64,000 nucleotides of DNA, from positions 11,036,001 through 11,100,000 of the forward strand of contig JBHGNT010000017.1 in NCBI GenBank assembly GCA_043228905.1, read 5' to 3'. The translations under genes and the position numbers were made by a program. The notes beneath the pieces were generated by a model. It did not search any database. It had not been told where the DNA came from and worked only from the letters and a program-made list of their open reading frames with translations. Source of the DNA: Azolla caroliniana (taxonomy: Eukaryota > Plantae > Polypodiophyta). Positions 7,008 through 58,170 of the stretch are shown piece by piece. The stretch's first letter is position 1. Each line of letters opens with the position of its first letter.

Positions 7008-7010
7008 GTT

Positions 7011-15407: not shown

Positions 15408-15409
15408 CA

Positions 15410-24744: not shown

Positions 24745-25115
24745 TGTTGTATGTATGGCTGGACTAGCCGCAACACAGGTGTCTATCCGACACTTCTCCA
24801 AAGGGGTGGTAGGGATAGAATGTTAATACACGCGTATGATAATTACACTTAAGCACAGACGAAGACAAGATTAATCAGCATAAGCAAAACTATATTAATT
24901 CTTCGCCCCTTCATTACAAAACATCGGATCCTTTTATAGGCATCCGGCCAGATTACAATCGGTGCTCGGTAGGCAACCGTTAACCGAAACCGAATCGGTT
25001 CGGATCCGGATCGGTTACAACTACCGGATCCGTCCCTCCTAATAATTCTATTCCTATTTCTATATTTATCCGATCCGACCTTGCTTTCCCATTTGCCTTC
25101 TCTGACCGGCCAACA
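24745..25115 (-). repeat. 5' LTR of element A
   Basis: Direct repeat of 15037-15407. Confidence 0.97.
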
Positions 25116-25734
25116 GTACTATTCCTGATAGTTTGAACCAGTTTTCCTCCTTTGGCCTACTTGTCGTTCTCCTTCATCCTCCTACCCTTTTCCCTATACT
25201 ATGGCTACTCTTAGCGCCCAAGAATATCAATCCGTTTTCTCCGAGCTACAGTGCCTAAAAGAAAAATTTGTTGCCTTGGAACAAGAAAACCAATTGTTAC
25301 CGATTAGGAACACGGTCTGCAGTCAGTCCTTCGACCTAGACCTACAAGTGATTGTGAAACAACGAATGGTGGCGTCTATGCGTAATACGTAGTGGAATGT
25401 TCCCCGTAACCTAGCAGCGTATAAGGGCGATGGCTACAACCGACTCCTTAGCAATGGTTACACTCACGTTCTTACACTCTCAAGTGTTCCAGACACACAG
25501 TAGATTAGTCGTAGCTATACACAAATATTCAGAGAAGATAGAATTCTATTACGATACACTTCTTTACATTCCCAAAATACACGCCCCTCTAACAGAGGTT
25601 TTCTACCCTTTATATACGCATGGTCTATTTAGCCGTTAACGCTTCCTGCGTGAACCGTTACATGCGTTATGATCTTATATTATTTCTTATTCCTACGCTC
25701 TTGTCCGTCGATTACTATTCCGGCGGACAACACC

Positions 25735-25775
25735 TGGCACGCTTATGGGACAGTGCCCTGGCACGTCGGACCCAT
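25735..25775 (+). promoter_or_regulatory. Inverted tRNA-Arg PBS-like module at the PPT position (element B)
   Basis: TGGCACGCTTATGGGAC-AGTGCCCTGGCACG-TCGGACCCAT, 2 nt from the LTR. Confidence 0.78.
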
Positions 25776-25779
25776 CCTG

Positions 25780-28545
25780 TTAATCTTCTTCCAAAATGAC
25801 CTGGATGTTTGGCTCTGCTACGGTGTCTGCGTCCGGAGGCGACGTAGGGCCCGTAGGTGCATCGTGGTGTGGTTCCCTTGTTTGGTCGGAATGGCTTCTC
25901 CCGGTGTCGCAGTCGTCATGTGTGGGCGGTCCGGGTATGGTGGGCTCTTCTTGAGCTAGGGGGTTGGGCTCCGCCGTCGTCGTGCTTGCGGTCGGCCGCG
26001 ACTCTGTCTCAATCGTTACTTCCTCCGTGGTGTCAGTCGTCGTTGTACGCTCCGGGGAGTGGGGTTGCGATTCCGCCTGGCCCGAAACGTTCTCCATGTG
26101 GTCCGCCGATAGCGTGGGCTCTTGCGGATGGGGCTCCTCTTGGGCAGCGATTTCGCTATTTGGTACTGTGGGGGACTCCGCTCGTCGGTCCGCGCTGTTC
26201 ACCGTTGTTGTAATTTTTGGTGATCTAGCCTAAGGTTCCTCTTCTTCAGTTGTGCCCGGAATTGGCGTCGCACTGGATTCCTCATTTGTTCGCGTGTTGC
26301 CGGCTTGTGTGATCTGGTGAAATAGCTCCTCCTGGCTTTCACCAAAATCATGTAAGAGCTGCGTGAGTTCTTCGGAATGTTGGTTCGCTAGCGCATGATA
26401 GTCTTGTGCTAGGTCCTCGCGTATGGCCGCAATGCTCTCCTCATTTAGTTTATAGAAACCTCGGCCGTCTTTTCGCCGGTTCTCCCAGTCCGCACGATAC
26501 GCGTGCAATTCCGCTGCTTGGGTTGCCCTCACCATCCATCGTTTGTCCAACGCCATTTTCAATTGTGTTGTGAACCTCTCCCGATTTGTATATAGAAAGA
26601 TACGCACGTTGTCTATGATGGACTGGCAACGGTTGCGTGCGTCCTCCACCGACTTCTTGAGGTTTGCAATTTCTTGCTGCCTAACCGCTGCCGCTTCTTC
26701 GTACGTGGTCTTCAGGCCCGCCCACAGCTGGGATTCCTTTGCATGTTGTTCTTCTAATCTCCCCATTTCATTGTTTAGGCGGATTTTGAGTTGATGCCTT
26801 CTTTCCTGTTCGACCACCAGCTCTTCGTCGAACCATACCTTCTTTTTCTCCAATAAGGCCTGGAGTCCCGCAATTGCTGCCTCCGATTTCTTCGCTTCAT
26901 CCTGTAATTGGGCATTTTTGTCTTTTGTCCGGATGTGTTGTACTACCTCTGTAGTGAGTTTCTCTTCAAGGGTTTTTACTGCCATCCGGCCGTTAGACCG
27001 GATCTCCTTTTCTCTGTCTGAGGATTGGCGCAGTTCAGCTCGAAGGTGGTCAATTTCCGATTCCGCTAGTTCCACGGCCCTTTTCGCTTTTGAGGCGATG
27101 ACGGTCTAAGCCTCAATTTCTTCCTTCAAAGCATCGATGGCGTGGCTTGGTGGCGGAGTTGCCTGTTGCGCCGTAGTCGCGTTAGATTCGAACTCCACGA
27201 TGCGTTCGCTGGCTCTTTGCAGCTCAGCTTGGGTCATTTTCACCTTCTTCCAGACATTCTTATTTTTAATGGCCATCTCCTTGGTGCCCGTGCTGACCTT
27301 TGCCAGTCCCCTATGGATTTCGACTAGGGTCGTGTTTAATGGGGGTAGCTCCATCCCCACTCGGCGTACACTGGCATTCCTCTTTCTGCCGACCCTGGCT
27401 AGCCGGTCCCCATCGTCGCTCTCCGCCGTTTGTGTTAGGGCGCACTCTATCATCAGGCGCTCCGCATGCTCATCGGCCATTCGTTGTGAGGCCTTTATCT
27501 GTTGTGTTGCCAGGAATTCCATAAGCTCAAAAGAGGTTCCGAATTGTAAGAGGGCGTTGAACTCATGGGTCATGTCCGGGATATTTGGATATGTCAAAAC
27601 CTCGCTTTCCGTCGTTAATACGGCTTTCCCTCATTGGGACTGGGTCGTAATGATCGGTCGTGGCTCCCGGATGATTTCGAAGGTGGTATTAGGCTCCTTA
27701 GTTGCGGAGCCATCGCCTTCGGTCGTTGTCTCTGCCGCCGTGGGGACGTCTTTGACCAATCCCCGCCCATCTTTCCCGTCCAATCTACGCCGTTTCGGTC
27801 TGGGGCTATCCTGTTGTGTTTCGGCGTCTGGCTCTGGGGCTGCTTCCGCGGAGCGTGCCGGTTGTTCCTCCTGCGTTGTCCATATGTCTAGCTGGGTGGG
27901 AGGTGTTGTCCACGTGTCTGGCTAGGCGGTTTGGGGTTCCTCTTCCCACTCTGGGGCAGCTAACTCCGCTAACCTACGCTTCGCAGATCGGGGCGGAGGC
28001 GTGGGTCGGCTGGGCTGCGGTGTCAGCAGGCCTCGGGGTGGGAATACCATCGTAAGGTACTGTTGGATGATCGGCTTGAGCTTTTTGCCTGCCTGATACG
28101 CATGCAGGCCTTCCCTTAACGCCGGCCTTGTGATGACCCCCCAATCAACCGCACACCCTTTAAAGGTATCGATAATGATACCCGCCTTCTGCTTGGGCAT
28201 CCCATATGCATTAACATGTGTGCAACCGACCTCTAACAGGAACTTGGCAACTTCACGGAAGAAGGGATCCAGGATCTGCTTCGTTCTACAAGCCTTGGAG
28301 GAGGAGAAATATGGCCCGAAATATCTTTGCAGCGCCTCTGCAGGATGGGTTTCGAAATGCTTTTCGCCTAGCAATTACAGGTCCAACTTTTTCTGGATGG
28401 AAGAGTTGGTGACCGTGTCGATGTTAAGCTTTCTGGCAATGTCCATGGCATCCGGGTGTGGGGGTGCCTCTGCGACCCGGATGTACCCATCCAGGCGTTT
28501 CTCCATGAGCCATCGGCATAAGGCAGTAGACATGAAGATCGACAT
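25780..28545 (-). pseudogene. Element B accessory ORF (broken)
   Basis: WLMEKRLDGYIRVAEAPPH, YFGPYFSSSKACRT, AVDWG, AAELHAYRADWENRRKDGRGFYKLNEESI; homologous to A and D. Confidence 0.85.
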
Positions 28546-28699
28546 CGATAGAGTAGGTTCGTGAGAAGGAGACTGGTGGTTGCGGTGGGTTGGAGCTCTG
28601 TGATAGGATGGAGGAGAAGGTGAAGGGGAGGAGCGATGGGAGCGCTGATAGTTAGAAGGTGGGTTTCTGTTTTGTGCAAAAGATTTTCTATTTCCATCT

Positions 28700-31600
28700 T
28701 TTTGTGGCTTAGGGTTCATTGGGCCGTGAGCCATCGTGGTGCCGCGTGTTCTTGATCTAGGAGTCTGTGCCCATGCGGGTTTGGAAAACCAGCACCGCTC
28801 GATCGATGGCGAACTCCTTTTCCCTTGCGTTCCGGTGTCGATCCACAAATGCTTTACACCCTCGTTGTTCTTGCTCCACACAACCATGCTGTGTATGCGT
28901 TGTTCCCCGAGTTCGAGTAGCTGGTGGAGCCGTACCTCCTCCTACTTGGCTTCAGATAGTCGGTCCCGTACCTGAATCCGCAAACTGGGTACCTGAAATT
29001 CTACCGGCATCATAGCCTCCAGCCCAAACACTAGTCGAAACGGTGTTGACTGTATGCTTGTTTAACTGGCCGTATGAACCTCACCTTCAAGAGTTTGTCA
29101 ATTTCTTCTTTTACACCGGTCGCGTAGTTTGGGTTCATGCGGTAGAGGCGCTGCTGGACGGGTTTTGCGTCGGTTGCTAAAGTGATCTTATGTTGATAGA
29201 ACTTGGGATCCAACCCCTTCATGTCCTCGTGAGCCCAAGCGAACACATCTTTATATTTCTTGAGTAGTGTGATCATCGTGTTTCTCTGGTCCGGCCTTAA
29301 TTCCTTTGCGATGGAGAGGAGACGGGGTTCTGACTCCGTCCCCACATTTACTTCGTCCAGGGCGGAGGCGGCGACTCGTCGTGAAATTTCCATTTCCCTT
29401 TCGAATGTTGCCCGTGCTCTGCTGAGTTCCAATATGGACTCTAGGTTTGGTTCGTAAGCCTCATCGTGGAGAATAGTGGCCGTTGCATATTCCGCCGCGG
29501 TTGTGATCACGTCGATTTCGAACAGCGGAATGATCCGAGGATGCTCATCTAGGTATGCCTCTAATTCTACATCCTCCACCCCAACCATCATATTTATATC
29601 TTCTACGTATAATGGTGTTATACCCTTGGGTTGTGGCGTGCTTCCTTCCGTAGGTACGCGAAACTTAGCGTGTGTCCGTGTCGGAAACTGATACACTTGT
29701 GTTGCCAGCTCTGCTTGATATTTGCTGCCCGAAGCCATGGTCTACCCAGAAGCACTAGGTATGCCCCTAGGGCGTCCAAGGCAAGGATGACCGTCGAGAT
29801 GTCGAAGCGATGTCCGCCCACTATAATGCCTATCTTGCGAATTAACCCAATGGTCGTACTGAGCGGGTATCTGCCATTCGGAGCTAGAATGGGCAAGCCT
29901 CCCATTCTGAAATGCCTAACTGCTCGCAAGTTTTCGCGCTAATTACATTGACGCCTGAGCCGCCATCGATTACGCATCCAGGAATTTCTTGTCCGTGTAA
30001 TATTAATGTAATAGCCGGGTTGTGGTGATCCACTACAGGCGGTTCGTCGCTAACATCTGTAAGGTTTGTAGCGACGCTCACCCCGGGTATGCCTGTCACC
30101 CGTTCTTCCATGGTTTGGCGAAAGCGTGGAACTAGCTGCAACAGCTTCTCCATGGTTAACGTTATCTCGTAGCCCGCTAATGCCTGCCAAATGGGGTCCG
30201 GGACCGGTCCTTCGTCCTCCACTCGCTCCCTCGTATTTGCGGACTCCTTCCGCATGCGTGTATTGGTCGCGTTAGCTTTTTCCACCCATGCCTGGGCTTG
30301 TTGTCGTATCTCATCTTGCGCGACCCAATCAGCCATTCTTTTTTGCTAGCGTGTCGTGACTTGCTGCACTTCTGCCATAATTGTATTGACGGCGGGCCCC
30401 TTGCCCTTTCGTGCTAGGCATTGTGTGGCATAATGTCCGGGTTGCTGACAAATAAAACAATGGATGCTTGATTCGCCCTTCTCAGCTCCTGGTGGTGTGT
30501 GCCGATCCCTTGGTGCGACTTGCTCCTCACGGTCCGGCCTTGTTTGTCGGAACGCATGCGGTGGTTCTTGGTGTGGTTCTTGGTGTCACTCATCTCCTGC
30601 AGGAGCTTTCGTTCTAACGCCGGTGATCTCGATTTTGCCGCGGCTTCCCACGATAACCATTGAAGCCGCCACGTTTGTTTGTTGGCCGGTGATTCTCATA
30701 GCGCCGGCCCCCTTTAGCATAACTCGGAGGTCCACGATAATTCTCATCCTCTGGTTCATCTTCCTCGGAATCGTTGTGATTTCGGTGATTCCGGTGCTGC
30801 CGGTCGTCACGTGGGTTGCGATCCACAAACCGTGGTCGGTCTTCTTGCCTCCTTTGTTCAGTACGGCGTGGGGGACGTTGTGTGTCCATGCTGCGTACTG
30901 TGGGAGTGGCTCTGTTCAACATATTGTATTCGCATTGTTCCACTATGTGAGCCTTTGAGTGGCCGATTGGGTAGTGGATTCGCATGTTGCACTCCACTGC
31001 GGAATGCCCCGAGTTCAAGCACATTGTGCACTGGATTGCTTGACGAAACTGGCGTTCCTCGTTTGGGGTAACGCTTGTCGTAAGGAGGACATAGAAAACC
31101 TTTCCTCCTCCTCGTCCAACTCAAGTTGTAACACTCGTTCAATGACCATATCCGTCGTTTCCCCTTTTACGCTATTGTTGTTGAGTGTTGCCCGTATAGG
31201 TCGGCGTAATGCTGCCAGAAATGTCTCTCGAGCCTCGTCCTCCGCGGGGCTCCGTTCTAGTTTTCCGCCGTAAATTTTGGAAACGTAAGCTGAAGTCTGT
31301 GATCGTCTCGGTTGACAGTTGCTTAATCGTGTAGAATTGTCTGAGGATTTCGCGTTGTGGAACCCTCCGATGGAAGAACCGCAAGAAGGCGGACTACATC
31401 TAATCGAAGGTTGTGATTGCTGGTAAATCCATTTGTGAATGCCAAAATGTCGCTCGCCCATCCAATGTTAACCCGAACTCTGTCATTTTTGACTGGTGCG
31501 CTACCGCCTCCGAAAGGCTCTACGCCATGTGGTTCACATTCCAGACATTAAGGAACATGCGAATATGGGTTGCGGCGTCGGTTTCGCTGTTAAAGCGGGG

Positions 31601-31720
31601 ATAGGTCGCTGAGGCGAGGCTTTTGCCGTGTGCATTCCTCTACCTAGTGTGTGACGGACCTTGTGATTGGCCGGTCTTGTCGTGTTGGTTCTCTGGGGCA
31701 TCTGCGACTAAACATCCATT
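28700..31720 (-). pseudogene. gag-pol: Element B gag-PR-(RT/RH/INT deleted) pseudogene
   Basis: Fragments CLNSGHSAVEC, WQALAGYEITL, DVFAWAHEDMKGLDP...IRPVKQA joined to PFRLVFGLEAMMPVEFQVPSL. Confidence 0.88.
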
Positions 31721-31751
31721 CGTCGTTGTTCGTCTGTGAGAAGACACAGAT

Positions 31752-31765
31752 CACCAAGCGTGCCA
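31752..31765 (-). promoter_or_regulatory. 5' PBS of element B (TGGCACGCTTGGTG, decayed tRNA-Arg(UCU)-type)
   Basis: TGG start 4 nt inside the 5' LTR; same family as the PBS at 58171-58183. Confidence 0.8.
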
Positions 31766-32329
31766 AAAGTGTTACCGATTAGGAACACGGTCTACAGTCA
31801 GTCCTTCGACCTAGACCTACAAGTGATTCTGAAACAACGAATGGTGGCGTCTATGCGTAATACGTAGGGAAATGTTCCCCGTAACCTAGCAGCGTATAAG
31901 GGAGACGGCTACAACCGACTCCTTAGTAGTGGTTACACTCACGTTCTTACACTCTCGGGTGTTCCAGACACACAGTAGATTAGCCGTAACTATACACCGA
32001 TTTTCAGAGGAGATAGAATTCTATTACGGTACGCTTCTTTACATTCCCAAAATACACGCCCCCTCTAACAAAGGTTTTCTGCCCTTTATATACGTACGGT
32101 CTATTTAGCCGTTCACGCTTCCTGCGTAAACCGTTACATGCATTATGATCTTATATTATTTCTTATTCCTACGCTCTTGTCCGTCGGTTACTAGTCCGGC
32201 GGACAACACCAACGGCTGATCGGGGATCTGCAACAAATCGCTCTAGAAAAACAACAAACGCAGCAACCGCATGGGGAGTTAGCGTTACGGGTACAACAAC
32301 TCGAAGCAGCATTGCAACACCCAGTACAT

Positions 32330-38519: not shown

Positions 38520-39105
38520 TTGTATCCGAAATGCAGGAAGGCGAGCAAGGATGGGAGTGAGGAGACAAAGATCGTGAGAGTGCTTGGGTGTAAGGGGTTA
38601 GGGTGCAAGAGGGAGTTTGAGTAGAAGATGAGAGAACTTGGGCGTCTTTGCAAAGTTGAGAGCTCTGTCTGTGTGTGCCTCTCTTGTTGTTCTCTGACCG
38701 GACAAGGCCTAACACAAGGTGTCGCGGAGACACTTCACCAAAGGGTGATTACGGCATAGGATTATGACTCAACGATTACACCGACTTACGTAGGTTACAC
38801 GATTAGAGCGCTTTTGTTAATTACACGCGTAAGATATAACAGTAATTACAGAACGGAAATCCACACAGAAGTATAAACACCATACGCTCTATTAATTATC
38901 CGCTGCGATTACAATGGGCTCCGGGCCTTTAAATAGGTTTCCGGTCCATAGTACAAAACGGTGCCTATCGCACCTATTCGGGATCCGTCCGGATCTGGAA
39001 CGGCATACCGTTTCCAGTCCGTCCGTCCATACTATGCTTATTTACAACCATACTTAATTAATTCCTTCACTCCGTATTTTGGACTTCTTGCCGGCCGGTA
39101 ACACA

Positions 39106-39143
39106 TGGCACGCCCGTGGGACAGTACCTTGTAGGTCGAACCC
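39106..39143 (+). promoter_or_regulatory. Inverted tRNA-Arg PBS-like module at the PPT position (element D)
   Basis: TGGCACGCCCGTGGGAC-AGTACCTTGTAGG-TCGAACCC, 2 nt from the LTR. Confidence 0.85.
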
Positions 39144-39155
39144 TTCTCGGCCCCT

Positions 39156-41816
39156 TCATTGTTCACCCAAATTGTCCAAAATACTTTGTTCCAGAGTTTC
39201 CAATTGTTCTTCCGGTTGTGGTTGTTGCGGCTGTGCTTGCTGCTGCTGCTGTGGTTGCGGTTGGGACTGAGACTGCTCTATAGGCGGCTGCTCCGTTTGT
39301 TTCTCTGACTCCGGCATCCCCGTTTGACTGCTTCCGGTCCGGTCTCCTTCCAGTAACGGTTCCTCATCACTGAGGTTGACCGTTACTGGTTCTTGTGCTT
39401 TCTCTTCCCGGATCCAGGACCTCTCGTAGCTTTCAAACTGGATCTGCGCCTCTAGCCTGTCGTCGTCCAGCTGAGCTACAAGTTGCCGGACTTGCCCTAG
39501 TTGGTCCTCTGCCAAGGCTTGAAAGTCTTCGGCCAGCTCATCTCTTATGCCGGTGAAGTCTTCGGAAGTCAGCATATAGCAATCATCTCCCTCCTTCCGC
39601 CGGTTCTCTACGTCGGCCCGGAGCAATTGGAGTTCCGCTGCGTTCGGGGCCCACTTGGTCCACCATTTGACGGAACCGTTGTCAATCAAGCTCTTGGTCT
39701 GGTTCAACCAGGCCCGCATGATATCCTGGATGCGACTTGCTCCCATTTGCGCTCTACTTTCCACAACTTGTCGTTCCTCCTTCAACTGCTTGATGAGATT
39801 AGCCGTATCCTCCGCCTGCTCTCTGTAGCGCGTCAGCTGCCCTTGATATGTTGTCTGCAGCCTCTGCAGTACCTCCGCCGCTCTTTCTCTTTCCGCCTGC
39901 TGTTGCCTGAGGAGCTCTGTCCGAACCTTCTCCGCCTCTTCCAACCGTCTTCTGGTTTCCGCTTGTTCATTAGCGTATGCCGTTGCGGTCCGATCATTTG
40001 CTTGCCGGAGCTCATCCGTCCGTTCCTTGTGCTCCGTTTGCAACCGTTTATACTCCCGGTGCAAGTGCTCAAATTCCTCCGTTTTTTGTTTGAGCTTGCC
40101 GTTGATCTGGCGATGGTTCCGGTCCTCCCGGTCCTTTAGCTGCCGGTGTTCCTCTTTCAGGCGCTCTACTTCTATTTCAGCGTTTCTCCGGAGCCTGTCC
40201 TTCTCTTGCAGCATTTTCTCCTTTTCCTCCTTGAGCCGGTCGTACGCTTGGTGGCCTTTTCGTAAGCTCTCCTCGGCCCGGCGTAGATTCTCAGCAGTCT
40301 TTTTGAGTTCTGCCTCCGCTGCCGTCTTCAACTCTCTTTCGCGGCTCCTCAGCGCTTCTTGGGCAGCTAGCTCATCCTTTAAGTCCGCAAGCTCTTGGGC
40401 TTGTGCCGCATTTCTCTCCGGAACGGTTTCCGTTGCCGGGGTCTGATTGCTATGTACAGGTTGATCTGACGCTTTATTCTGTACATTGCCCGGAGTCACC
40501 GGTGCTTGGACTTGTGTTGTCAAAGCCAATTGAGCCATTTCCCTTGTGACCCTGTCCAAGTCTTGTTCAAGGCTCCGGATTCTGGACCGGGCCGTCTCTA
40601 GATCTACGGTTGTGACGAGCAACCGTTCGTGGTGCACTCTCTCCTCCGCCTCTATGTACTCAACCGCTCCGGCGATCTGCTCGCCTACCCGCCGTAGCCA
40701 CATGCTACTGGTGCCTTGCTGCTGTACTGGTCGGGTCGGCTCGTTCACTGTGGAATTGTCTGGCCTGAGTGCCTGTATCTGCCGTTCTGGTTCTACTCCT
40801 TGGCCGCTGTGTGTGCTGGCTGGGCTCGCCGGCTGTTGAGTTCCGGTTCTCGCCGTCTCCGGAGCCGTTGGAATGACTTCTTGTATAGAAGTCGACAAGG
40901 CCGGTTCTATACGCACCGGTTCCGGTTCCTCCCTTGTGGTTTGCTCAGGTTGAGTTGGGGGCGTTTCTTCCTTTTGCGGGTACGCACGCTCCCCCGCTGT
41001 CCCGGCGGTCCTACTTCTTGACCGTCGTTGGAGGTGCTCTACTGGCTCCTCCGTTTCCTCTTCCTGGGTAACGGCATGTATCTGTGCCGTCAAGGGTTCC
41101 GGTTCCTTCTGTCCCGGTCGCCGTATGGTTATCTTAACGGGTCGGACCGGTGACACCTCCTCCGGTTCTGGGAGCCGTTTCTTCCCTTTCGTTGCCTTCG
41201 ACGCCAGCAGCAGTTGTCGTTTGGACGCGGGTTTCGAGGTGCTTCCTTCCGATAATCTTGGCCGCTTCTTTGGCTGGACGGTGTCGACCGGCGGCGCGAG
41301 CAATGTTATCCACTGAGCTACGGCATGCCACAGCTTCCGGCCCTCCTTGCCGTCCTTTCCTCGTACCGTGTCGATTGCCGCGCACAAACCGTCTGCAATC
41401 AACACCGGCCAATCCACCTTGATCCCTTCATAGGTGGCTATGATCATCCCTGCCCGATTTTTTGGCATGACAGGGGGTCGAGGGTACATGTGGCCGTACT
41501 CATGGAGCACTCGAGCTATCTCCCTGAATAGCGGATCTTCGCCGCCCTGCGTTCGATAGCCTTTGCCGGCTAGAGAGTACTCACCGAAATATCAGATGAG
41601 TTGCTCCGATGTTGGGTTATCGATCTGAAAAATACCTCCCTCCGGAAGGCCTGTTAGGGCACGGATCGCTTCCTCGGTGATGACTTCTGTGTCGAGCTCC
41701 TTGATGACCCGGTCGGCTTCTTTGTGCGGTGGTGCCTCCATGATGGTCAAGAACCCATCCAGTCCGTGTTGCCTGAGCCATTTCCTGGCCGCTTCCGACA
41801 GCGTTTGTGGGTCCAT
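39156..41816 (-). CDS. Element D accessory ORF (~886 codons, one in-frame TGA at 41592-41594)
   Basis: MDPQTLSEAARKWL...SEQLI*YFGEYSLAGKGYRTQGGEDPLFREIARVLHEYG continues in frame into the 784-aa ORF. Confidence 0.87.
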
Positions 41817-42218
41817 GTCTGCTTCGAGGTCGAGGAAAGATGGCGAGGTAGAGTGGTGATGAGAGTGAGAGCGAGAGAGAGAGAGTTCCGAACGTGGGGG
41901 TTCTCTGAGTGCAGGTTCGCGTTTGCTAAGCTTCCACCGCCTTGGTGCTTCTGTGCTTCTTGGCTCGCGAAATGAAAAGGTCTCCATGCGTTCTGCTTTT
42001 TCTCTGTGCGTCTTGGCGCCTTTTTCGAGCATGCGCACGTCGTGTACCAATTTAGTATTAAGTAATGTGGCGGCTCTTAAATGCCCACTACGTACCTTTT
42101 CGCTCCTTGCTTTCACGTCCGTTCATACCTTGATTTTTAATGATTTCTCTTCTTCTTCTTTTTTTTTTTTAATTTATTTTTTATTTATTTATTTATTTAT
42201 AAATGACGGTATGTGATC

Positions 42219-45200
42219 TTACACATCCGTAGGTCCCTTCGGACCCTTACTGTTTTCCTTACGGGTTGCCGTGTCTTCCTTCGCCTCTGCTACGGGTTCC
42301 CTGTCGTCTTTTTCTTCCATCCGTACCGTTCCCGGTATAGTGCCGGTGGGTTGCATAAACGGGTTATTTGGCATCGGTCCTTTATAGGGCTTTAGTCTAA
42401 ATCCGTTGACCCACTTGCCTAGCACTTCACCGGCAAGTGTCCCTAACTGATAGGACCCGTTGTATTCCCGTGTCAGCCAATACGGGCCTGTCCATCTAAA
42501 CCGGAGTTTACCCGGCATCTTGCCCATCCTCGTTTGCAATACTAGCACCGGCTTTCCGATTTCGAACATCTTTTCATTACCTTTCCGGTGACGGTCAACG
42601 AACGCTTTCCGTCGTCGTTGCTCCAGTTCCATGTGTAGGATGCTGGCCAGCCGTTGCTCCTCCAGTTCGCATAGTGCTGCTAGCCGCATTTCCTCCGACT
42701 CCTTTTCATTCAGCCGTTCCCGTAGTTGGATCCGTAAGCTTGGTACCTGAAATTCCACCGGCATGACCGCCTCTAAGCCGAACGCTAACCGGAACGGCGT
42801 TGTCCGGATACTTGTTTTGTATGCCGTTCGGTACGCCCATAGCGCGCTATGGAGCTTTGTATCCCAGTCCGTCCGGTTTTCATTGACGATTTTGCGGAGA
42901 ATGTTCTGGAGCGTTTTATTGGTTGACTCTGCTAACCCGTTTGCTTGTGGGTAGTACGGTGTGCTCCGTTTATGGACCACGGCATAGAACGTTGTTAAGC
43001 TTTCAACTACCTGGCCGAGGAAGTGCCCTCCTTGGTCGCTGATTAATTCAATCGGACATCCATATCGGCACCAAATGTTTTCGTACAGGAATTTTGCTGT
43101 GGATGACGCGGTGTTGTCTCTCAAGGCCTTAGCCTCCACCCATTTAGTGCAATAATCTGTTGCCACGATGACATAAGGATTACCCGTTCTCATTGCCGGT
43201 GGCTTGAACGGTCCGACAAAATCCAACCCCCACTTCTGGAATGGCTCTAGTGGAAGTACCGGTTGGTGTGGCATCCGTGCTTGCTCCGTAGGCTGGCCCA
43301 TTCGTTGGCATAGGTCACATTCCTTAGCATACTTGACGGCGTCTTTTAACGTCGTGGGCCACCATAAGCCGCTCTGCCATACTTTCCTTGCCGTCGCTTC
43401 CCCGGCATAGTGTCCTCCGGCAACCCCACAGTGTGCTTCCCGTAAGATTACTTGTTTCTCGTCACTACGGACTGCCCGTCTCCATATTCCATCTGCTCCC
43501 TTGTGGTAGAGAGTGCCCCGTAACAGAAAGAAATTGCGGCTCTGCACCGCCAGTCGTTTCCTCTCGTCCCGGTTCATTTCCTCCGGTGGCAGGCCCGTGC
43601 TTAGGAACTGGTGCATGTTTGTCAGCCACCTATCTTCTGATGCCACCGTGTCGTCCGCTGCCGTTTCCGGGGTGATACGGAATAACTCTGCGTCCGGGAA
43701 TTCATCCGATACTCCGTCGCCTGATTCTCCGGACTCTAACCGGCTCAGGTAGTCTGCTACGGCATGCTGGATACCGGGCCGGTGGAAGATCTCGAATTCG
43801 AACTCCTGCAACAGCAAGGTCCAACGGGCCAACTTACCGGTCAGGGACGCCTTGGACACTAAGTACAGGAGCACCGAGTGATCCACATGAAAGGAGAACT
43901 TCCTTCCCAATAGGTAATGACGAAACTTTGTGACACTGTAGATCATGCCCAAGGCCTCCCGTTCCGTAGTCGAATAGTTCTTCTCCGCTTGGGACAGCTT
44001 CCGGCTGGCGTAATATACCGGCCGGTACCATTTGGGCTCCGTAAGTTGCATTAAGGCGCTGCCGATAGCGATGTCGGAAGCGTCAACGAACACATGAAAT
44101 TCCTTGCTCCAATCCGGAGGCTGCACGACGGGTGCTTGCGACAAAAGTACCTTCAGGGCATTGTATGCCTTATCCTCCGTATCCGTCCATTGGAACGGTG
44201 TCCGATGTACCGCGGTGTGTAATGGTGTAGCCAAGTCAGCCAAGTGACGGAGCATCCGGCTGTGCCACCGGATCTGTCCTAAGAATCGGCTTAGTGCTTT
44301 GGCCGTTTTCGGCGCCGGTGCCCCTAGTATCGCGTTTACTTTGTCCGGGTCGACCGCAATGCCCTCCTTACTTACAATGTGTCCCAGTAATATTCCACTT
44401 GAAACCCCAAAGATGCATTTTGCTGGGTTTAAGCTTAGCCGGTATAACCTACACTTTTCAAGGCATAACCGTAGGTGCTGCAAATGGTCTTTTTCCCGGC
44501 TATAGACTGCAAAGTCATCCAGGAAAACCTGCATGAAGGCTAGAATGTATTCGCCGAAGATCTCCATGATGATTCGCTGGAAAGTTGCTGGTGCCGTTTT
44601 TAGTCCGAACATCATTACTACGGCCACAAACACCCCCCATTCGGTGACGAACGATGTCTTCTCCTGGTCGTCAGGGTGCATCCGGATTTGATTGTATCCG
44701 CTGAACCCGTCTAAAAAGCTATAAACTTCATGGCCGGCGACGGCATCCAGTACTCCATCCGTGAACGGAAGAGGGAATGCATCCGTAATTGTGGCTGCAT
44801 TTAGTTTCCTGTAATCTACACACACGCGGATTTTACCGTTCTTCTTTGGGACGACGACAATGGGGCTCAGCCACGTCGCTTTCTTTACCGGCCGGATGAA
44901 GCCCACTCTTAGGAGTTTGTCGATTTCCTCCTTCACTTTGGCGGCGTAGTTGGGGTTCATTCGGTAACGTCTTTGCGCCACTGGTTTCGCGTCCTTGCCT
45001 AAGTGGATCTGATGTTGATATAATTGAGGGTCCAGCCCTCGCATGTCTTCATATGACCAGGCGAATACATCGCGAAACTCCGTGAGAAGTTTGATCATCG
45101 CCGCTTTATCTTCCGGCTTCATTTCTTTGGCGATGTGTACCGGCTTTGATTCGTCCTTGCTTCCTAGGTTCACTTCGTCGAGCTGGGATGTTTTTACCCG

Positions 45201-48074
45201 TTGGGAAACGGCCATTTCCCGTTCCAACGCTTCCTGTGCTTGCCGTAATTCCCGAATCGAATCTTTGTCTGGTTCGGCTTCGGTTTCGTCCCGCTACGGC
45301 AAGTATGGCGCTACGGCTTCAGCTACGTCAATCTCGAAGAGTGGTACGATCTTCGGGTGTTCCTCCAAGTACTGGGCTTCTTCGTCGTCTGCCAACCCTT
45401 CAAGCATGTTCACGCATTCCGCATACAACGGTATGCATTCCTTACCGTTGCTCGTCCGTGGTTGTGTCGGTACCCGGACCTTGGCTTTTCCGCGCCGGAA
45501 GGTAATCATATTTTTCCGCCAATTTTGCTTGATGTGTGCTGTTTTCAACCATGGTCTGCCCAGCAACAGTGGGTACGCGCCTTGCGCCTGTAGCTGCAGC
45601 ACTACAGCCGAGATGTGAAATGTGTGACCTCCTATGGTGACCTCCAATTTCCGTATTAAGCCCGTCGGCCGTACAGAGCTCGTATCCGCCATCCGTAGCC
45701 AGAACGGACATGGCTCCCATTCATGTATACCCAAGGCATCACACGTGCGGAGGCTTATTACGTTCACCCCGGAACCTCCATCGATTACTGTGCCGGGAAG
45801 TTCGTGCCCTTTGACAATAGCTGTAATCACCGGACTACTAGTGTCCACCACCGTCGGTCCCTCCACGGGATTCGAGAAGAGGACTGGTGCCGGTGGGGCT
45901 ATACTGTCTGTCATGACCGTTTTTAGTCCTTCCGTAAATCGAGGCACGAGCTGCAAGAGTCTTCCTAATGGCAACGTGATCTGACATTCTTGCAGTGCTT
46001 GCCATGTCTCGTTTTCTGCGTGGCTACCGCCGGCACTCCCTATGGTATTCGCCTTTTGCCGTTCCGCGTCCGCGACGTTCCTTTCATTGGCTTCCTTCAC
46101 CCATTCCGTCGCCTGTTTTCGTATGGCCTCTTGTGTTTCCCACTCTTTGGCCATGCCTTTCGACCGTGTGGTTACTTGTTGTACATCCGCCACTTCCGGA
46201 ACCACCATATTAACTGCTGGTCGTTTATCGTAGCTCTTTGCCGGGCACTGGTTACTGTAGTGGCCTTCCTGCCTGCAGTAGTAGCAGTACTCTTTACGGG
46301 TATTGCTGGATTCAGCATTGCTGGTAGCCGGAGTCGGTCCCGTAGTGAGTGGTGCGTTCTGTGCCGGTTGGTTCCTTGGGGTTCCATGTTCCGGGTCCCT
46401 AGTGTGACCACCTTTCTTATTATTCTTATTTTTATTTCGGTAGTCCTGTCGTGGTGGATCGTAACATCGGCCGTAGTCCTCCTGGTGCCTTCGGTAACCA
46501 GGGGAATGGTCTCTGTCGTATTGCTCGTGTCGTCTGTTGGACTCCCGATAACGGTCCGATCGCTCATACCGGTCGTAGTTATCATGTCGATCCCCGTACC
46601 GGCCATCATTCTCTTGTCTGTCTCCGTACCGGACATCCTGTGCCGGTCGGTACCGGTTCATTCTTTGCCAACGATCTTCATCTTCGTCTCGGCTGCTTCT
46701 TGGCTCGATCCGTCGGACGGGTGGTGCTTGTCGGTTTAACAGGTTATACTCGCACCGGTCCGTTGTATGACTCTTGGATTGACAAATCACACACTGGGTT
46801 CGCATGGTGCACTCCACTGCCGAGTGTCCGGCATTCAAGCAAATTGTGCATTGAATTGCCTGCCGGAACCGAAGATCTTCATCGGTGGGTAACGCCCGTT
46901 GCAGTGCTCCCAGTGTAAGCCATGAGCTTGACTTTTCCATTTCTCTGACTCGGTCAATGACCTGGTCAATGGTGCTTCCTCGAAAGTCGATCACCGTACA
47001 CACCGTGCGTAACGGTTCCCGGAGTGCGTTTAAAAATATCGTCCGTAATTCCTCCTCCGGGGGTGCACGGGCAAGCTGGCTATGCATTCGTTGGAAACGG
47101 ATGACGAATTGGGGAATGCTTTCCCCTGCTTCCTGTCGGATCGTATAAAACAGGCCCACCATTGTCGTCTGGTCGACCTCCTTGTGGAAAAAATGCAAGA
47201 ATTTTGCTTTTAATTCTGCAAAGGTTGTGATGGTCGCCGGGTCCTGCGTCCGCCGCCATCGTGCCGCTGGTCCTTCCAACGTGACCCCGAATTCCGCTAT
47301 CTTCGAGCGTTCTTCTTCCTCCGGTGTCAGTCGCTGGGACGCGTGATTTGCTTCCCATGTCTGCTCGAAGGCATGAACATGCGCTTCCGCGTCCGGATCA
47401 TCGCGATACTTTGAGTATTGGAACGGCATGTCGTCGTCCAGTATTAGGCCGCGGTTTAGTGGCGTTTGTTGATATCTTTCCGGTTTTCTCTCCGGTTCCA
47501 CTTCCGGTTCTTTTGCCGGTGCTTTTTCCGGTTCCTCTTCCGGTTCTTTTTCCGGTTCCTTCACCGGCTCTTCTTCCGGTACCTTCGCCGGCTCTTTCGT
47601 TGGTGTCGGTGGCTTTGCTTCTTCCACTTCCGGTGTTGGTGGGTTGACGGCTTCCGTTTGCGGTTCCGGATAGCCCTGGTCGAACGGTTCCGGTTCTGGA
47701 GTCGGCACGGTATCCGACCCGTCGTCCTCCGGGCCGACGGGGGTATCGTTGCTGCTCCGGTAGTTCGTGTGCACGCTGTATCCCCCTTCGGAATCCGATT
47801 CGTAGGCTGAAAAGGCTTCTGCCTCGTTTTCTCCGCTTGCCAGCGCCTCGAGGAGGCGTTCGGTTTCCCGGAGACTACTTAGACCGCTTCCGTCGTCCTG
47901 GTCGCGAGTTTGCTGTAACCGAAGAGATTCCTCCGCGACTCTCCGGATCTCGTTGGAGAACGAACGATCCGAGCGAATTTCGTGCGCTGCTTGCTGGAAA
48001 GTCTCACGCCGTCTTTGCCATTCGGCGAGGCGTCGAGCTCGGTCTGTAACCAGGTCGTGCGTTGGTCTCGTCAT
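42219..48074 (-). CDS. gag-pol: Element D Gag-Pol, one in-frame TAG at 45294-45296
   Basis: Same domain set as A; the 926-aa and 1002-aa ORFs share a frame (YLP*RDETEAEPDKDSIRELRQ). Confidence 0.95.
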
Positions 48075-48102
48075 CCATTAAGCCATCGTTCGCTGCGAGA
48101 AA

Positions 48103-48121
48103 GCAGGAATCGTGGTCGCCA
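48103..48121 (-). promoter_or_regulatory. 5' PBS of element D (TGGCGACCACG)
   Basis: 6 nt inside the 5' LTR; identical to element A. Confidence 0.85.
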
Positions 48122-48582
48122 AAACTGTGTTGTTCTCTGACCGGACAAGGCCTAACACAAGGTGTCGCGCAGACACTTCACCAAAGGGTGATTACGGCAT
48201 AGGATTATGACTCAACGATTACACCGACTTACGTAGGTTACACGATTAGAGCGCTTTTGTTAATTACACGCGTAAGATATAACAGTAATTACAGAACGGA
48301 AATCAACACAGAAGTATAAACACCATACGCTCTATTAATTATCCGCTGCGATTACAATGGGCTCCGGGCCTTTAAATAGGTTTCCGGTCCATAGTACAAA
48401 ACGGTGCCTATCGCACCTATTCGGGATCCGTCCGGATCTGGAACGGCATACCGTTTCCAGTCCGTCCGTCCATACTATGCTTATTTACAACCATACTTAA
48501 TTAATTCCTTCACTCCGTATTTTGGACTTCTTGCCGGCCGGTAACATCTCTTATATCTATGCCTTGGTTGTTGACTCATGGT

Positions 48583-51500
48583 TGTTATGTACACATAACA
48601 TTGGTGAGGGTAGGTCGCTAATATTTACATTACTGAAGGGTATGTTCACTAATGTTAAAAAGGGGCTAATGTGATTGGATAGAAGGAATGATAGGTGCAT
48701 GCACTATCATGATTTGGGCAACCAATGAATGGAGAGCCTTTTTGAAAGGCACATCTATTTAAGGGGCCTAGGAAAAGGTATAAATATGAGGCTTCGCTAC
48801 CCTCATAAGGAGATGACATCGGAAGGTTGTTGTCTTAGACACCGATGGTGTGGGCTAGGCTTTCGTCTCGACGATCGTGTTTATCTCTTCCAAGGTATTA
48901 GTCGTCCTAATATCTGGTGGTATGGGACGTTGGTGGTAGGTTGGTTATGTCTAGATCATAGCACGGGGGTGGTCGGGTGGAATGGGTTCTTCTATCCAAT
49001 CTATTTCCCTTCTTTTACTTTACTTTGGTCTATTGATTAGTAATAGACTCTTAACAGTAGTATCAGAGCTTTTAATAACAATTTTTTATTTATTTTTTGA
49101 TATTTTTTGCGTGTGAGGGATGGGGATCTAACAAGGCTCGTCATGCTCTTCTCAAGATCAAAACAACACTCTAAACCTGGTATTGTTCTTTCTTGATCTC
49201 TCTTCTTTCTATGATGCGTTCTTGTTGGTCGAATCAAATTTGTATTACGTTCTCTTTTCTTTTCTTTCTTCTTTCTACCACGATACGATTTTAATTATTA
49301 TTGTGCATCGGGCCGAGCGTGTTTGCTCTAATCGCACACACTCAACTCATGGCCCTTTTGTATATTGCGATATATCTCCTATGCTCCCCTCTCTTGAGCC
49401 TTCTCTTACAATATTAATTATTGTTGTGCATTGGGTCGAGCGTGTTTCCCCTAATCTCACACGTTGACCTCATGGCCCTTTTGCATATGATTTTGAGTAT
49501 GCCACTCTTCCCTCTATTGAGCCATCACTTGGCCGAGTCTATGGGATGTTGTGGCCATGACAAGGTATATGTCGCCTACCTATGCCACTCTACTCTCTAT
49601 TGAGCCATCACTTGGCCGATTCTATGGGATGTTGTGGCCTTGACGAGGTATATGTCACTTACTTATGTCACTTTACTCTTTATTGAGCCATCACCTGGCT
49701 GATTCTAGGGAGATGTGGTGGTCTTGAGGAGGTGAGGTGCATGTCGACTACTCTAGGGTTTCCCACCTTAAGGCATGCTTAATGTTCCATACACCTAATT
49801 GCTTATTATTCTAATTAATTTTTAATTCCACAAATTGTCATTTCGCTTATATGATTATCTCGTAATTATTGTTTACTCGCCCACAATTAACTCTCCTTTT
49901 TCCACTTCCTTTTCGTGTATAAAGTATTTACGTGCGTTTACCTATGATGTAACGCTTCCGTGTAGACTGTTTTTTTTGTATGGAGTGGGCATCATGCTGT
50001 TTTTTTTGAACGATTTTTTTCAACTGATCATCTATGTTTAACTCATATTATCGAGCCTTAGAACTCAAGTAAAACCACATGAGTTCGTCTATTGATGTTT
50101 CTCATGGATTTGAGTACCACATCTTTGCGTATCAATTTGTGGCTTATGTCACAATTGTGCAAATTACAACCGTCATATTGGGATGTATATGTGCTATACC
50201 TCACACCATCCATTTATTTGTGACATTTTCTTTTAGTAGGTAACACATGGGTTTTCTACCCTTGTTTTCGTCACTACTTGATTCTTATGGGTAGTGCCTT
50301 ATTTTATCGTTTTTTTCATATAATATTACTTGCGAGTGCACTTGTTTTCTCACGTAATACACTTTCTCCACCATATCAATACATGTTGGGTTGACATTCT
50401 AATATAAGGCTAACTAGGAAACTACATTGATGTTAGAACCATGGTTATTCAAGATAGAGATCCGAGAAAGATAGCTATGTCCATGGTTTTTAAAACACCA
50501 TAGTGTTACCATAGTTATCGGATCTCGAATCACATCTCATATGTCTAGAGGGGTAAAGACGTGAGATGCTTTCTTGGTAAAGTTCTTCCAATCAAAATTT
50601 CAAGCATTCATTTTGCTTGCGTATTTTGTAAACCTCCTTATTTATATTGCATAATCATAGCTTGCATCATGTAACAAGTTTTGAACATTGTTGGAGCAAT
50701 CACTCCCACCAACACCGCTCTACTCCAATCCGCATCTTGCACACAAGCTGAGATCACTATTGAGCAATTGCTCACTACCACCTTGAATCAATTGGCCGAA
50801 ATGAGGCAAGCCAATATGGCATTGGAAATGAAATTCCAAGAATCGACTATTGAGTTCAAGAAAGAAGGTGAGCCTTCTTTCGTAGTAACGCCATCGACTA
50901 TGGCACTTGGCTTGGTCGTTGGGAGTCTCACTTTGAGCTCCACCCCCAGCCCGATGCTATAAAAATTGGTTATGTCCGTCGTGAGTTAGGTGGCCGAGCT
51001 GCTGCTTGGGAAGGTTAAGAAACAGGTTTTGCATCCACCTTCTCAAATTGAACAAGCACAACACTTGCTCACGTTGTCGAGTAAGCATTTACCTCTCTCG
51101 AGGATTATGTGCATCATGCTCAGACCTAGATCCAAAAATCGGGACTTACGGGTGAGAAATGGTTTGTTGCTTGCTTTTTGAGTGGTATTCCTAATGGGGA
51201 TTACCATTGGATTGTCCATGACAAGGACCCCACAACTTTTAAGGAAGTCGTCAACATTGTACTTCAATACCATAGGATTTCCAAGAAAGACCATAATAAG
51301 CCTAAGTTCGCCAAAACTCTGAATGTCAAGTTCATTGGGAAATGTAAGCAATCCACTGACACTCTTGACCGCGACTCCAAGAAATCTAACCTCTTATGTG
51401 CATATTGCAAGAAATGGGGCCACACAAAGCATACCTATCGTCATCTTGAGAGGAAGTCAATGAACACCCCTCCCCTCCTCAAGACAAATCTATGCGTCAC

Positions 51501-53830
51501 ACAGGTGAGTCTTTTGATGTTGTTGAAGTTCATACTAACCACTTAAGTTCATGTGAATGCACTTTTCCTTCACATTTACTTGGACCTAATGAATTACGCC
51601 GAGCAGTCGAGTATATCAATGGAACACAAGCACATTTCTTGTTTGATTCCGGTAGTTCTCACAATTTTCTTAATGATCATTTTGTGGAGCAAATGGAACT
51701 CCACATAAACGCAAGTGATCATATCTATCAAGTTCACATGGCAAATGGAAGCCTTCAATACATCAGTTGCATTGTTTGTCAACTGCCAATTCAAATAGAT
51801 ACCTATTTGGAGAAGCTTGACATTCATGTTATGAAACTACAATCCGCAAATGTCATTTTAGGATACCATTGGTTTTTTAATAAAAACCCTTCTTTGTCCA
51901 TTGATTGGGTTAATCACTCAATCACATTTGAACTTAATAATTGTAAACATTTTATTCAATGTTCCAAACTTCCTTCTCGTTCACTTGTGTCTTCTAAATC
52001 TTTAATTGGGTATTCTAGTTCATTAATTTATTCGTGTGTAATTGATCCTGCGCTTCAATTTTATTATTTTAATATTGACGCCGCACAATTACCACATTAT
52101 GAACAACAATTACTCGACTCTATTTTAGATGATTTTCAAGACGTGTTTCCTAACGAATTGCCGCTTACCTTACCAACTTAGCCGATTAGAAGAGGACGAG
52201 ATCACTACACAAATTAAGGAATACTTGAGTATGGGTCACATTAGGTATAGTACATCACCTTAGGGTGTGCCAGTTCTATTAGTTAAGAAGAAGGAAGGTT
52301 CATGGCGAATGTGTATCAATTATTGCCGTTTGAATAAAATGACAATTAAAAATGCATATTCGCTACCTTGTGCCGATGATTTGATTGATCATTTGCATGG
52401 GGCCCGATATTTTACGAAAATGGACTTACGGACATGTTATTATCATATTCTCATTGCCGAGGATGATATTCCTAAAACCGCTTTTCATATGTGCTATGGC
52501 CATTATGAGTTTTTAGTCATGCCTTTCGGGTTGACTAATGCTCCATCCACATTCCAACAAGCGATGAATGACGTTTTTGGAGATCAACTCGGTGATTTTG
52601 TTGTCTTCTTGGATGATACTTTGATATATAGCCATACCTTGCAAGATCATGTTCAACATGTTCGATTTGATTTGCAAAAGTTGCGTGACAACTCTTTCTA
52701 TGCAAAACATTAAAAATGTGATTTTTTCCAAAAATCTATTGTGTACCTAGGTCATTTAATTACGGAAAATGGTGTTGAAATTGGACCTTCTCGTATTGAA
52801 AAGGTTAAACTTTAGCCCATTCCTCGTAATATTCGTGAATTGCAATCTTTCTTAGGTTTTGTTGGATTTTTACGAAAATCAAAATTTCATAACTATTCCA
52901 AATTGACTACGCCATTAACTGACCTTTTAAAAGGTCATCCACATAAGTTTGTCAAACCCATTGCATGGAATGAACAACTTGACAAATAATTTGAGACACT
53001 CAAAGAACATGTGTGTCAGACTCCCACTCTTCTAAGCCTTTATCAATCGAAACCGATGCTAGTGATTATGCTATTGGTGTCATTCTTTATCAAGGCGGTC
53101 ACCCTATTGCTTTTGAAAGTAAGAAGCTTGATGATGCTCAATCTCGGTATTCGGTTCAAGAGAAAGAGTTGTTTGCGGTAATACATGCACTTAAAACATG
53201 GAGGCACTATCTCTATGGAAATAAATTTGTGGTTACAACATAACATCAATCATTGAAGTATTTTTGTGACCAACCAGATCTTCTTGGTCGTAAAGGCCAT
53301 TGGGCTAACCTTTATGCAAGGATTTGATTTTTCCATACGGTACTATGAACACCGTATGTTATGTACGCATAACGTTGGTGAGGGTAGGTCACTAATATTT
53401 ACATTAGTGAAGGGTATGCTCACTAATGTTAAAAAGGGGCTAATGTGATTGGATAGAAGGAATGATAGGTGCATGCACTATCATGATTTTAGCAATCAAT
53501 GAATGGTGACCCTTTTAGAAAGGTACATCTATTCAAGGGGTCTAGGAAAAGGTATAGATATGAGGCTTAGCTACCTTGATAAGGAGATGATGTCGGAAGG
53601 TTGCTGTCTTAGACACCGGTGGTGCGGACTAGGCTTTCATCTTGAAGATTGTGTTTATCTCTTCCAAGGTATTAGTCATCCTAATATCCGACGGTATGGG
53701 ACGTCGGTGGTAGGTTGGCTATGTCTAGATCATAGCTCGGGGGTGGTCAGGTGGAACAGGTTCTTCTATTCAATCTATTTTCCTTCTTTTACTTTACTTT
53801 GGTCTATCGATTAGTAATAGACTCTTAAAA
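48583..53830 (+). mobile_element. Degenerate chromovirus-type gypsy, integrase deleted
   Basis: 474-bp LTRs at 48583-49056 and 53357-53830; PBS TAGTATCAGAGC (decayed iMet, 49058-49069); knuckle CAYCKKWGH; PR FLFDSGSSHNF; RT PVLLVKKKEGSWRMC..VFLDD; RH ETDASDYAIG; flanks ATGGT/GTGGC compatible with a decayed TSD. Confidence 0.9.
49275..49730. repeat. 5' UTR tandem repeats (~130 bp x2, then ~84 bp x3)
   Basis: ATTATTGT..GCAT.GGG.CGAGCGTGTTT twice; TATTGAGCCATCAC.TGGC.GA.TCTA.GG three times. Confidence 0.85.
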
Positions 53831-53959
53831 GTGGCCCTATGCCATAGATTCAGAATCTTCCTTGCCATACTGGGAGTTAAGGACCATGCGTTGTGTGAAC
53901 CGTTAGTACTTGCTTTTTTCGTATGGCGTGCATGGCCTTAAAATAGTGAGTGGGTCTTT

Positions 53960-54335
53960 TTTTTTCTTCTTTTTTCTTTTTTCATAACTAAGTAGGTAGG
54001 AATTTACCGTGATTGAGACATGTTGCCCTAGATATTCTCAATTTCACCTACCACTGGCTGGTCTTAGCCATGCTCTTGTTTGGCAAAAGGGTTCGGTGGT
54101 GTCAGTCAGCGGTACGGTTTCAATCGAAATCTGTTGACCTGATTCTTTTTTTTTTTTTTTTTTTTTTTCTTTTTTCATAACTAAGTAGGTAGGAATTTAC
54201 CATTATTGAGGCATGTTGCCCTAGATATTCTCAATTTCACCTACCACTGGCTGGTCTTAGCCATGCTCTTGTTTGGCAAAAGGGTTCGGTGGTGTCGGTC
54301 CGCGGTACGATTTCAACCGAAATCTGTTGACCCAA
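53960..54335. repeat. ~190-bp tandem duplication bounded by poly-T
   Basis: TTTTCATAACTAAGTAGGTAGG...AATCTGTTGACC occurs twice. Confidence 0.92.
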
Positions 54336-58042: not shown

Positions 58043-58170
58043 ATGGAGTCAGCGGTATCCTCGGTTGGCTCGGTGCGGCTAGATGTGAACCGAGAGTGGG
58101 TAAGACTTTGGGCGCCGTAATGGCGACTGGGGTGTCCACCAACGTTTGTTCGTTGTGATGTAGAGCGTGA

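Follow-up and report, generated by a model that had tools for sequence, protein, structure and literature searches.

A tRNA-like module at the polypurine tract position in a clade of Ty3/gypsy retrotransposons

To our knowledge, priming of plus-strand DNA synthesis at a polypurine tract (PPT) is held to be near-universal in retroviruses and long terminal repeat (LTR) retrotransposons, and the tract is treated as diagnostic in annotation tools. In the Ty3 element, a tRNA bridges the 5′ and 3′ ends of the genome. Gabus et al. 1998 reportedly described a 5′–3′ bipartite primer-binding site (PBS) for Ty3, whose 3′ part is tRNA-complementary on the genomic RNA and serves to start minus-strand synthesis. 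CCA-ended 3′ tRNA-like structures are found in plant RNA viruses and the Mauriceville retroplasmid, where whole tRNA mimics stand at the 3′ end of the template RNA. Self-priming from the element's own RNA, cut by RNase H, is known for the minus strand of Tf1/Sushi and is predicted for the plant Tcn1 and TAR elements (PMC6317226). The same survey of plant elements, which has no analysis of polypurine tracts, describes a mostly tRNA-Asp-type PBS in Athila and a second, archaeal-type RNase H in Tat, Ogre and Retand (PMC6317226). Our search of the open-access literature found no description of PPT-less elements, of a second or inverted PBS, or of a tRNA-like plus-strand primer, and a text search of papers and the PMC6317226 supplements for PBS and tRNA strings returned primers and adapters only.

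Here we analyse a 64,000-nucleotide (nt) stretch of the Azolla caroliniana genome (hereafter the window), in which recently transposed Ty3/gypsy elements carry, where a PPT is expected, a compact module resembling the 3′ half of a tRNA. We describe the module and its conservation, and weigh what it may do.

Element D and its relatives

The window contains nested LTR retrotransposons, all genes of which lie on the minus strand. Element D (38685–48546, minus strand) is a Ty3/gypsy retrotransposon, with Pfam domains in the corresponding order Retrotrans_gag, zf-CCHC, RVT_1, RT_RNaseH and rve, also on the minus strand; the Pfam search did not score a protease domain. Because D is encoded on the minus strand, 38685–39103 is its 3′ LTR, and the module next to it is tRNA-sense in the element RNA. 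The two LTRs, of 419 bp each and with TGTT...AACA ends, differ from each other at 2 positions and are bordered by a perfect 5-bp AGAGA target duplication. The features of D are as follows.

38680–38684, minus strand: target-site duplication AGAGA (element sense), 3′ side of D
38685–39103, minus strand: 3′ LTR, 419 bp, TGTT...AACA, 2 differences from the 5′ LTR
39104–39105, minus strand: 2-nt spacer TG (element sense) separating CCA from the LTR, NG in every family
39106–39122, minus strand: tRNA 3′-end-like 17 nt, GTCCCACGGGCGTGCCA, ending in 11 nt identical to the tRNA end implied by the sister-family 5′ PBS
39123–39135, minus strand: 13-nt spacer forming the inner hairpin, with a private change at 39134 (family majority CGTACAAGGTACT)
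39136–39145, minus strand: AAGGGTTCGA, T-arm-like 5′ strand of the outer helix plus TTCG bulge
39156–41510, minus strand: extra 3′ open reading frame (ORF), 784 residues, no Pfam family, stop codon 10 nt before the module
41592–42116, minus strand: short ORF between pol and the extra ORF, 174 residues, no significant family
42219–45227, minus strand: pol ORF with reverse transcriptase, RNase H and integrase (Pfam)
45294–48074, minus strand: gag ORF with zinc knuckle
48106–48121, minus strand: putative 5′ PBS TGGCGACCACGATTCC of ordinary type, 6 nt past the 5′ LTR, identical in elements A, L208 and L210
48128–48546, minus strand: 5′ LTR
48547–48551, minus strand: target-site duplication AGAGA, 5′ side of D

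The Pfam search of D detected neither a chromodomain nor a second RNase H. The lack of a chromodomain, together with the large extra ORF 3′ of pol, is as in the Athila/OTA non-chromovirus lineage (PMC6317226), and the nearest named relatives of D are plant elements. The PBS of D differs from the tRNA-Asp type (TGGCGCCG...) that dominates in Athila, and no second RNase H like that of Tat, Ogre and Retand was scored in D. The protein encoded by the extra ORF belongs to no Pfam family and has only seven relatives in the database. It ends in a conserved acidic motif (...ILDxLxEE/EQ), followed by the stop codon 9–15 nt before the module (39156–39230 in the window; also A, C, L016 and L208–L210), and in D a glutamine- and proline-rich stretch lies ahead of this motif.

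The sequence-only reading had treated D as a family independent of element A, a view that our comparison refutes: the two are sisters, with 84% identical pol sequences, identical 5′ PBSs and placement in one clade with 100% support, and the module in both is thus inherited. The LTRs of A and D, between which that reading saw little similarity, have diverged but are still homologous, with 57% identity as compared with 44–48% for shuffled sequences, and have their termini and U5 blocks in common. In a quick pol tree with a midpoint root, A and D are sisters within a 100%-supported clade that also contains P0001, L032, L016 and L067; L001, L002 and P0005 form the sister group of this clade, and the elements with a tRNA-Asp PBS and a PPT fall outside it. 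The outgroups L003, L017, L085 and L087 have a tRNA-Asp PBS. Mapping the trait on the pol tree, as had been suggested, places all carriers of the full module in one clade.

Several other repeats lie in the window. A truncated relative, F (53957–58700, minus strand), retains a 5′ LTR end, a PBS TGGCACGCTCGGT at 58183 and pol remnants at 54603–56743, terminates in an A-rich tandem duplication (53957–54340), and has no extra ORF, module or 3′ LTR. The LTR pair E (48583–53832; 476 bp, 91% identical) adjoins the 5′ LTR of D and encloses a 4.3-kb interior with no long ORF and with local repeats of 83 and 82 nt (49284–49663); E is probably a non-autonomous element. The copia element B (2287–7621, minus strand) has identical 611-bp LTRs and a tRNA-iMet PBS, TGGTATCAGAGC, and is very recent. 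Tandem arrays with periods of 41 nt and about 188 nt occupy 8809–9324 and 11473–12282, inside the AT-rich sequence that separates the elements.

The module ahead of the 3′ LTR

Read in the element sense, D continues through GGGTTCGA, a 13-nt spacer, GTCCCACGGGCGTGCCA and TG into its 3′ LTR. The plus strand of the window confirms the earlier description of a tRNA-like module with a 13-nt spacer lying 2 nt (CA) from this LTR: the LTR end ...GGTAACA is followed by CA (39104–39105), TGGCACGCCCGTGGGAC (39106–39122), AGTACCTTGTAGG (39123–39135) and TCGAACCC (39136–39143). The final 55 nt of D before the LTR, in the element sense, consist of the stop codon of the extra ORF, AGGGGCCGAG, AAGGGTTCGA, CCTACAAGGTACT, GTCCCACGGGCGTGCCA and TG, after which the LTR begins with TGTTACC. 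There is no purine run adjoining the 3′ LTR of D, and a polypurine tract is absent there, as it is before the 3′ LTR of the eight other module copies. By comparison, the copia element B, which served as a control within the same window, has a normal tract, GAAGTGAAGGGGGAG-TT-TGTT, and at the equivalent position G-rich tracts are present in L003 (Riccia), L017 and L085, relatives primed by tRNA-Asp.

Two exact matches to the 15-mer CCCACGGGCGTGCCA are present in the window, both 2 nt ahead of a 3′ LTR (in A and D), as compared with a chance expectation of about 1e-4 per 128 kb, and a version with 3 mismatches stands at the equivalent place in the older element C. The corresponding features of A and C are as follows.

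15408–15449, minus strand: module in sister element A, GTGGGTTCGA-AGTGCAATGCACT-TTCCCACGGGCGTGCCA-TG
25733–25775, minus strand: module in older element C, ATGGGTCCGA-CGTGCCAGGGCACT-GTCCCATAAGCGTGCCA-GG
Around 31765: C's own 5′ PBS, TGGCACGCTTGGTG

The LTRs of A (15037–15407 and 24745–25115) are identical. Given this identity, the 2 LTR differences in D and the perfect target duplications of both elements, the earlier claim that elements without a PPT have transposed recently is borne out. The older element C (25292–32208) has LTRs that are 93% identical; its 5′ PBS TGGCACGCTTGG and its module tail AAGCGTGCCA share two transitions by which they differ from A and D, so that PBS and module tail co-vary within one element.

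Six further module copies were found in related contigs, retrieved via pol and via the extra ORF (L016, L067, L032, L208, L209 and L210); the contigs L009, L010, L084 and L086 end before any 3′ junction. The module thus occupies the same offset in nine copies from at least six families. Its 5′ part reads (G/A)(T/A)GGG-TNCGA and is followed by a 13-nt spacer (14 nt in C), with one extra A after GGG in L208; its 3′ part reads (G/T)TCCCA(C/T), then RRGCGTGCCA (RGACGTGCCA in L210), NG and TGTT. The older elements L001 and L002, with pol 55–60% identical, have kept only ...GGTGTGCCA-RG-TGTT, and the arrangement CCA-NG-TGTT is common to all nine module copies and these two degenerate ones. L001 also has a perfect 8-bp hairpin, CATTTGTC-TC-GACAAATG, directly before CTCCACCAGGTGTGCCA-AG-TGTT (11722–11778); this hairpin differs in kind from that of the window families and occupies an equal relative position.

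Two other interpretations of the junction were considered and rejected. A misplaced LTR border, with the module inside the LTR, is at odds with the 5′ end of the element, where the target duplication, not the module, precedes the 5′ LTR; and a PPT in the purine-rich terminal stretch of the extra ORF would stand about 50 nt upstream of where one is expected. An automatic search that combined a PBS with terminal inverted repeats to locate 3′ junctions in single-LTR contigs gave far too much noise and was dropped. A pattern scan of IMG/VR gave 120 matches, none with module features, all of which we took as chance.

Logan contigs of four plant runs (four organisms) were aligned to 38685–39700, with only matches of at least 80% likeness considered; none of the RNA runs contains element D. 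In every run, the summed depth peaked in the bin 39093–39126, at 2 to 6 times the neighbouring bins. Many contigs align over 39097–39143 and then diverge, towards the LTR at 39097 or 39100 and towards the element interior at 39143, with heterogeneous continuations past these edges (agreement about 0.5). The depth peak and the heterogeneous divergence at its edges together indicate that the module is common to many otherwise unlike families. The sole variant within the module among those listed is 39134 G>C, present in nearly all contigs. Comparison of module and flank, which had been set beforehand as the refuting test, found the module far better conserved in the contigs of the four runs. No other stretch is as well conserved as the module. 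Between families, LTRs and extra ORFs have diverged past alignability, whereas the module is nearly invariant and its offset fixed.

A tRNA-like tail and an upstream hairpin

The sister families C, F (58183), L032 and L067 have a true 5′ PBS that starts with TGGCACGC(C/T)(C/T)GGT; positions 9–10 of the PBS are TT, TC, CC and CT, respectively. These sites imply a host primer RNA ending in ...ACCGGGCGTGCCA, and from them we infer the sequence and identity of the primer tRNA. Yeast tRNA-Arg(UCU), which we take to end likewise in ...GUGCCA with U72-G73, offers a lead only for this identity. The last 11 nt of the module are identical to the implied tRNA end, being the complement of the sister-family PBS, and the module tail would correspond to the 3′ terminus of an actual host primer RNA. 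Among the module copies, the substitutions within the tail are G-to-A (L016, L067, L210 and C). Elements A, D, L208 and L210 share a different 5′ PBS, TGGCGACCACGATTCC, a putative tRNA site that pairs with the module over at most 4–5 nt.

The likeness to a tRNA weakens upstream of the tail. Just before the 11 nt, the module is one C shorter than the PBS-implied tRNA end, and in the GGGTNCGA...CCCAC part the equivalent of T-loop position 55 varies (T, C or A). The module amounts to a tRNA 3′ half with an encoded CCA, with no full cloverleaf and no A and B boxes. ARAGORN found no tRNA genes in the window or in the 33 retrieved loci, and an Rfam search with the module gave no tRNA match, the only hit being to tmRNA at E = 0.73. 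The sequence-only reading had explained the module by selection on tRNA pairing rather than a one-off accident; the module is indeed under selection, but a tRNA constraint fits its CCA-proximal 11 nt only.

A further element of that reading was the hairpin ACCT-TGT-AGGT in the spacer of D. The spacer can fold, but this particular hairpin hangs on a base private to the D copy, since 39134 is C in nearly all contigs of the four runs and in the D-like L210, which gives CGTACAAGGTACT. This form, the contig majority and also that of L210 and L208, pairs GTAC with GTAC in the same register as in other families. In a six-row alignment (A3), two helices, formed by columns 1–5 with 27–31 and by columns 12–14 and 16 with 20–23, are 94% paired, as compared with 33–54% when the partners are slid, and RNAalifold adds the pairs 10–26 and 11–25. 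Compensatory changes occur at pair 1–31 (G-C to A-U in C) and pair 11–25 (C-G to A-U in A); pair 13–22 takes three pair types and pair 14–21 two. The second base of the TNCG bulge is variable (T, C or A). Covariation evidence for the hairpin, from about five independent families, is moderate. There are no G-U pairs among the 54 helix cells, a small sample, so the covariation is compatible with folding of either the RNA or the DNA strand and does not assign one. Folding of single sequences gave z = −2.1 for A and no significant value for the others, with D and L032 favouring other folds; as these energies are unremarkable, the structure is argued from covariation. Judged by the compensatory changes, the variable position-55 equivalent and the one C fewer than in the tRNA end, the upstream part of the module is maintained for its cis hairpin and not for complementarity to the tRNA.

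Probable plus-strand priming and related systems

The module is very probably a plus-strand priming site, because its fixed CCA-NG-TGTT geometry equals that of a PPT and because young elements offer no other candidate. As our main reading, with a probability of about 0.45, we infer that it is the plus-strand priming site of a PPT-less Ty3/gypsy clade and that a tRNA acts there as the primer in trans. The module would then consist of two parts. One is the 11-nt tail CGGGCGTGCCA, which stops exactly 2 nt before U3 and matches in full the CCA end of the host tRNA that presumably primes the minus strand of the sister families; the other is the upstream hairpin, which would have descended from the T arm of that tRNA. 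Once minus-strand DNA had been made and its template removed by RNase H, the tail complement TGGCACGCCCG on the minus-strand DNA would become a primer-binding site. A packaged tRNA would open its acceptor stem only, anneal beside the folded hairpin and be extended into U3-R-U5, and the 2 extra bases would be trimmed later by integrase. A and D have kept the tail although their own 5′ PBS differs, which points to an outside reference, the tRNA, rather than to drift of the tail together with the element; moreover, the G-to-A changes in the tail, opposite a G of the tRNA, would leave a G-T wobble and count for tRNA pairing. Against a tRNA in trans, the contiguous match is only 11 nt long, the T-arm-like part is kept as a cis helix, which is equally expected of a self-made RNA primer, and A and D would have to package two different tRNAs. 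The fuller proposal, that these are dual-tRNA-primed retrotransposons in which a host tRNA at an inverted PBS on the minus-strand DNA primes the plus strand and the T-arm part has evolved into a cis hairpin, is one that we put forward tentatively, at somewhat less than even odds.

The same hairpin could instead belong to a primer made in cis, a reading that we regard as a serious possibility but not the expected outcome. RNase H would cut the genomic RNA after CCA and spare the 11-nt tail, so that a tRNA-shaped piece of the genome would prime the plus strand; the RNA upstream would refold as the hairpin and leave the hybrid, as the plus-strand counterpart of Tf1-type self-priming. Such a primer has a precedent in the minus-strand self-priming of Tf1/Sushi (PMC6317226). 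It would account for the four compensatory pairs (1–31, 11–25, 13–22 and 14–21) that maintain an intramolecular helix, for the freedom of the position-55 equivalent to vary and for the one C by which the module falls short of the PBS-implied tRNA end, and it would spare A and D a second tRNA. However, the protected stretch would be a mixed GC-rich sequence, and we know of no RNase H resistance in sequences of this kind. The cis primer also leaves unexplained why the tail equals a tRNA end, including CCA, in families with a changed PBS, and a helix devoid of G-U pairs among 54 cells is unusual for an RNA-only structure, albeit in a small sample.

Two readings dispense with priming at the module. 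A role of the RNA itself is improbable: the genome would be circularised by pairing with the 5′ PBS, or a mimic of the tRNA 3′ half would bind a protein of the host or the element, and the plus strand would start at a cryptic site. The module tail and the element's own 5′ PBS are indeed complementary over about 10–11 nt in C, L032 and L067, but the PBS of A, D, L208 and L210 pairs with the module no further than 4–5 nt. Nor would such a role give a reason for the fixed 2-nt distance to U3, and no other candidate primer adjoins the LTR, the nearest purine-rich stretch lying about 50 nt upstream. Far less credible still is a neutral relic left by capture of a tRNA or a tRNA-derived SINE fragment and passed down in close families. 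The restriction of full-module carriers to one clade and the failure of Rfam to score the module as a tRNA are what such a relic would predict, but a relic accords poorly with a module that stays nearly invariant at a fixed offset between LTRs and extra ORFs that cannot be aligned, with the compensatory changes, and with young elements that possess no other plus-strand primer.

If dual-tRNA priming is true, both cDNA strands would start from tRNAs, neither a PPT nor an RNase H-resistant RNA would be needed, and, with the cis hairpin in place, unwinding of the tRNA would be limited to its acceptor-stem strand. An abundant and recently active plant clade without a PPT would mean that the plus-strand start can be re-invented, here from a tRNA end, and the module offers a testable case of tRNA priming on a DNA template or of a tRNA-shaped self-primer. 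The hairpin variant in the window separates a constraint on tRNA sequence (11 nt plus CCA) from a structural constraint. LTR-finding pipelines that score polypurine tracts will under-rate elements that bear the module.

The module shares with the PPT of retroviruses and LTR retrotransposons its position, 0–2 nt before U3 of the 3′ LTR, and its presumed job of fixing the 5′ end of plus-strand DNA and thereby the left end of the cDNA. Unlike a PPT, it is not purine-rich, being instead a tRNA 3′ end with CCA behind a conserved hairpin, and, if a tRNA primes, its primer originates outside the genome RNA. The strand complementary to the module RNA resembles a canonical 5′ tRNA PBS (LTR end, CA, TGGCAC...), with 2-nt spacing as in L001 and L002, and it shares its first 11 nt with the genuine 5′ PBS of the sister families; in contrast to a canonical PBS, the module lies at the opposite end of the element and on the opposite strand, and could bind a tRNA only in minus-strand DNA. 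Like the bipartite PBS of Ty3, the module places tRNA-related sequence near the 3′ end of a Ty3/gypsy genome, but it has the same sense as the tRNA, whereas the Ty3 site is tRNA-complementary. Tf1/Sushi self-priming parallels the cis primer in that a piece of the element's own RNA, set by an RNase H cut and a fold, is the primer, and differs in that it starts the minus strand by means of the transcript's 5′ end, with no tRNA mimicry (PMC6317226). As in the 3′ tRNA-like structures of plant RNA viruses and the retroplasmid, a CCA-ended, tRNA-derived fold would mark the point at which a polymerase starts; unlike those structures, the module is internal and represents the 3′ half of a tRNA only.
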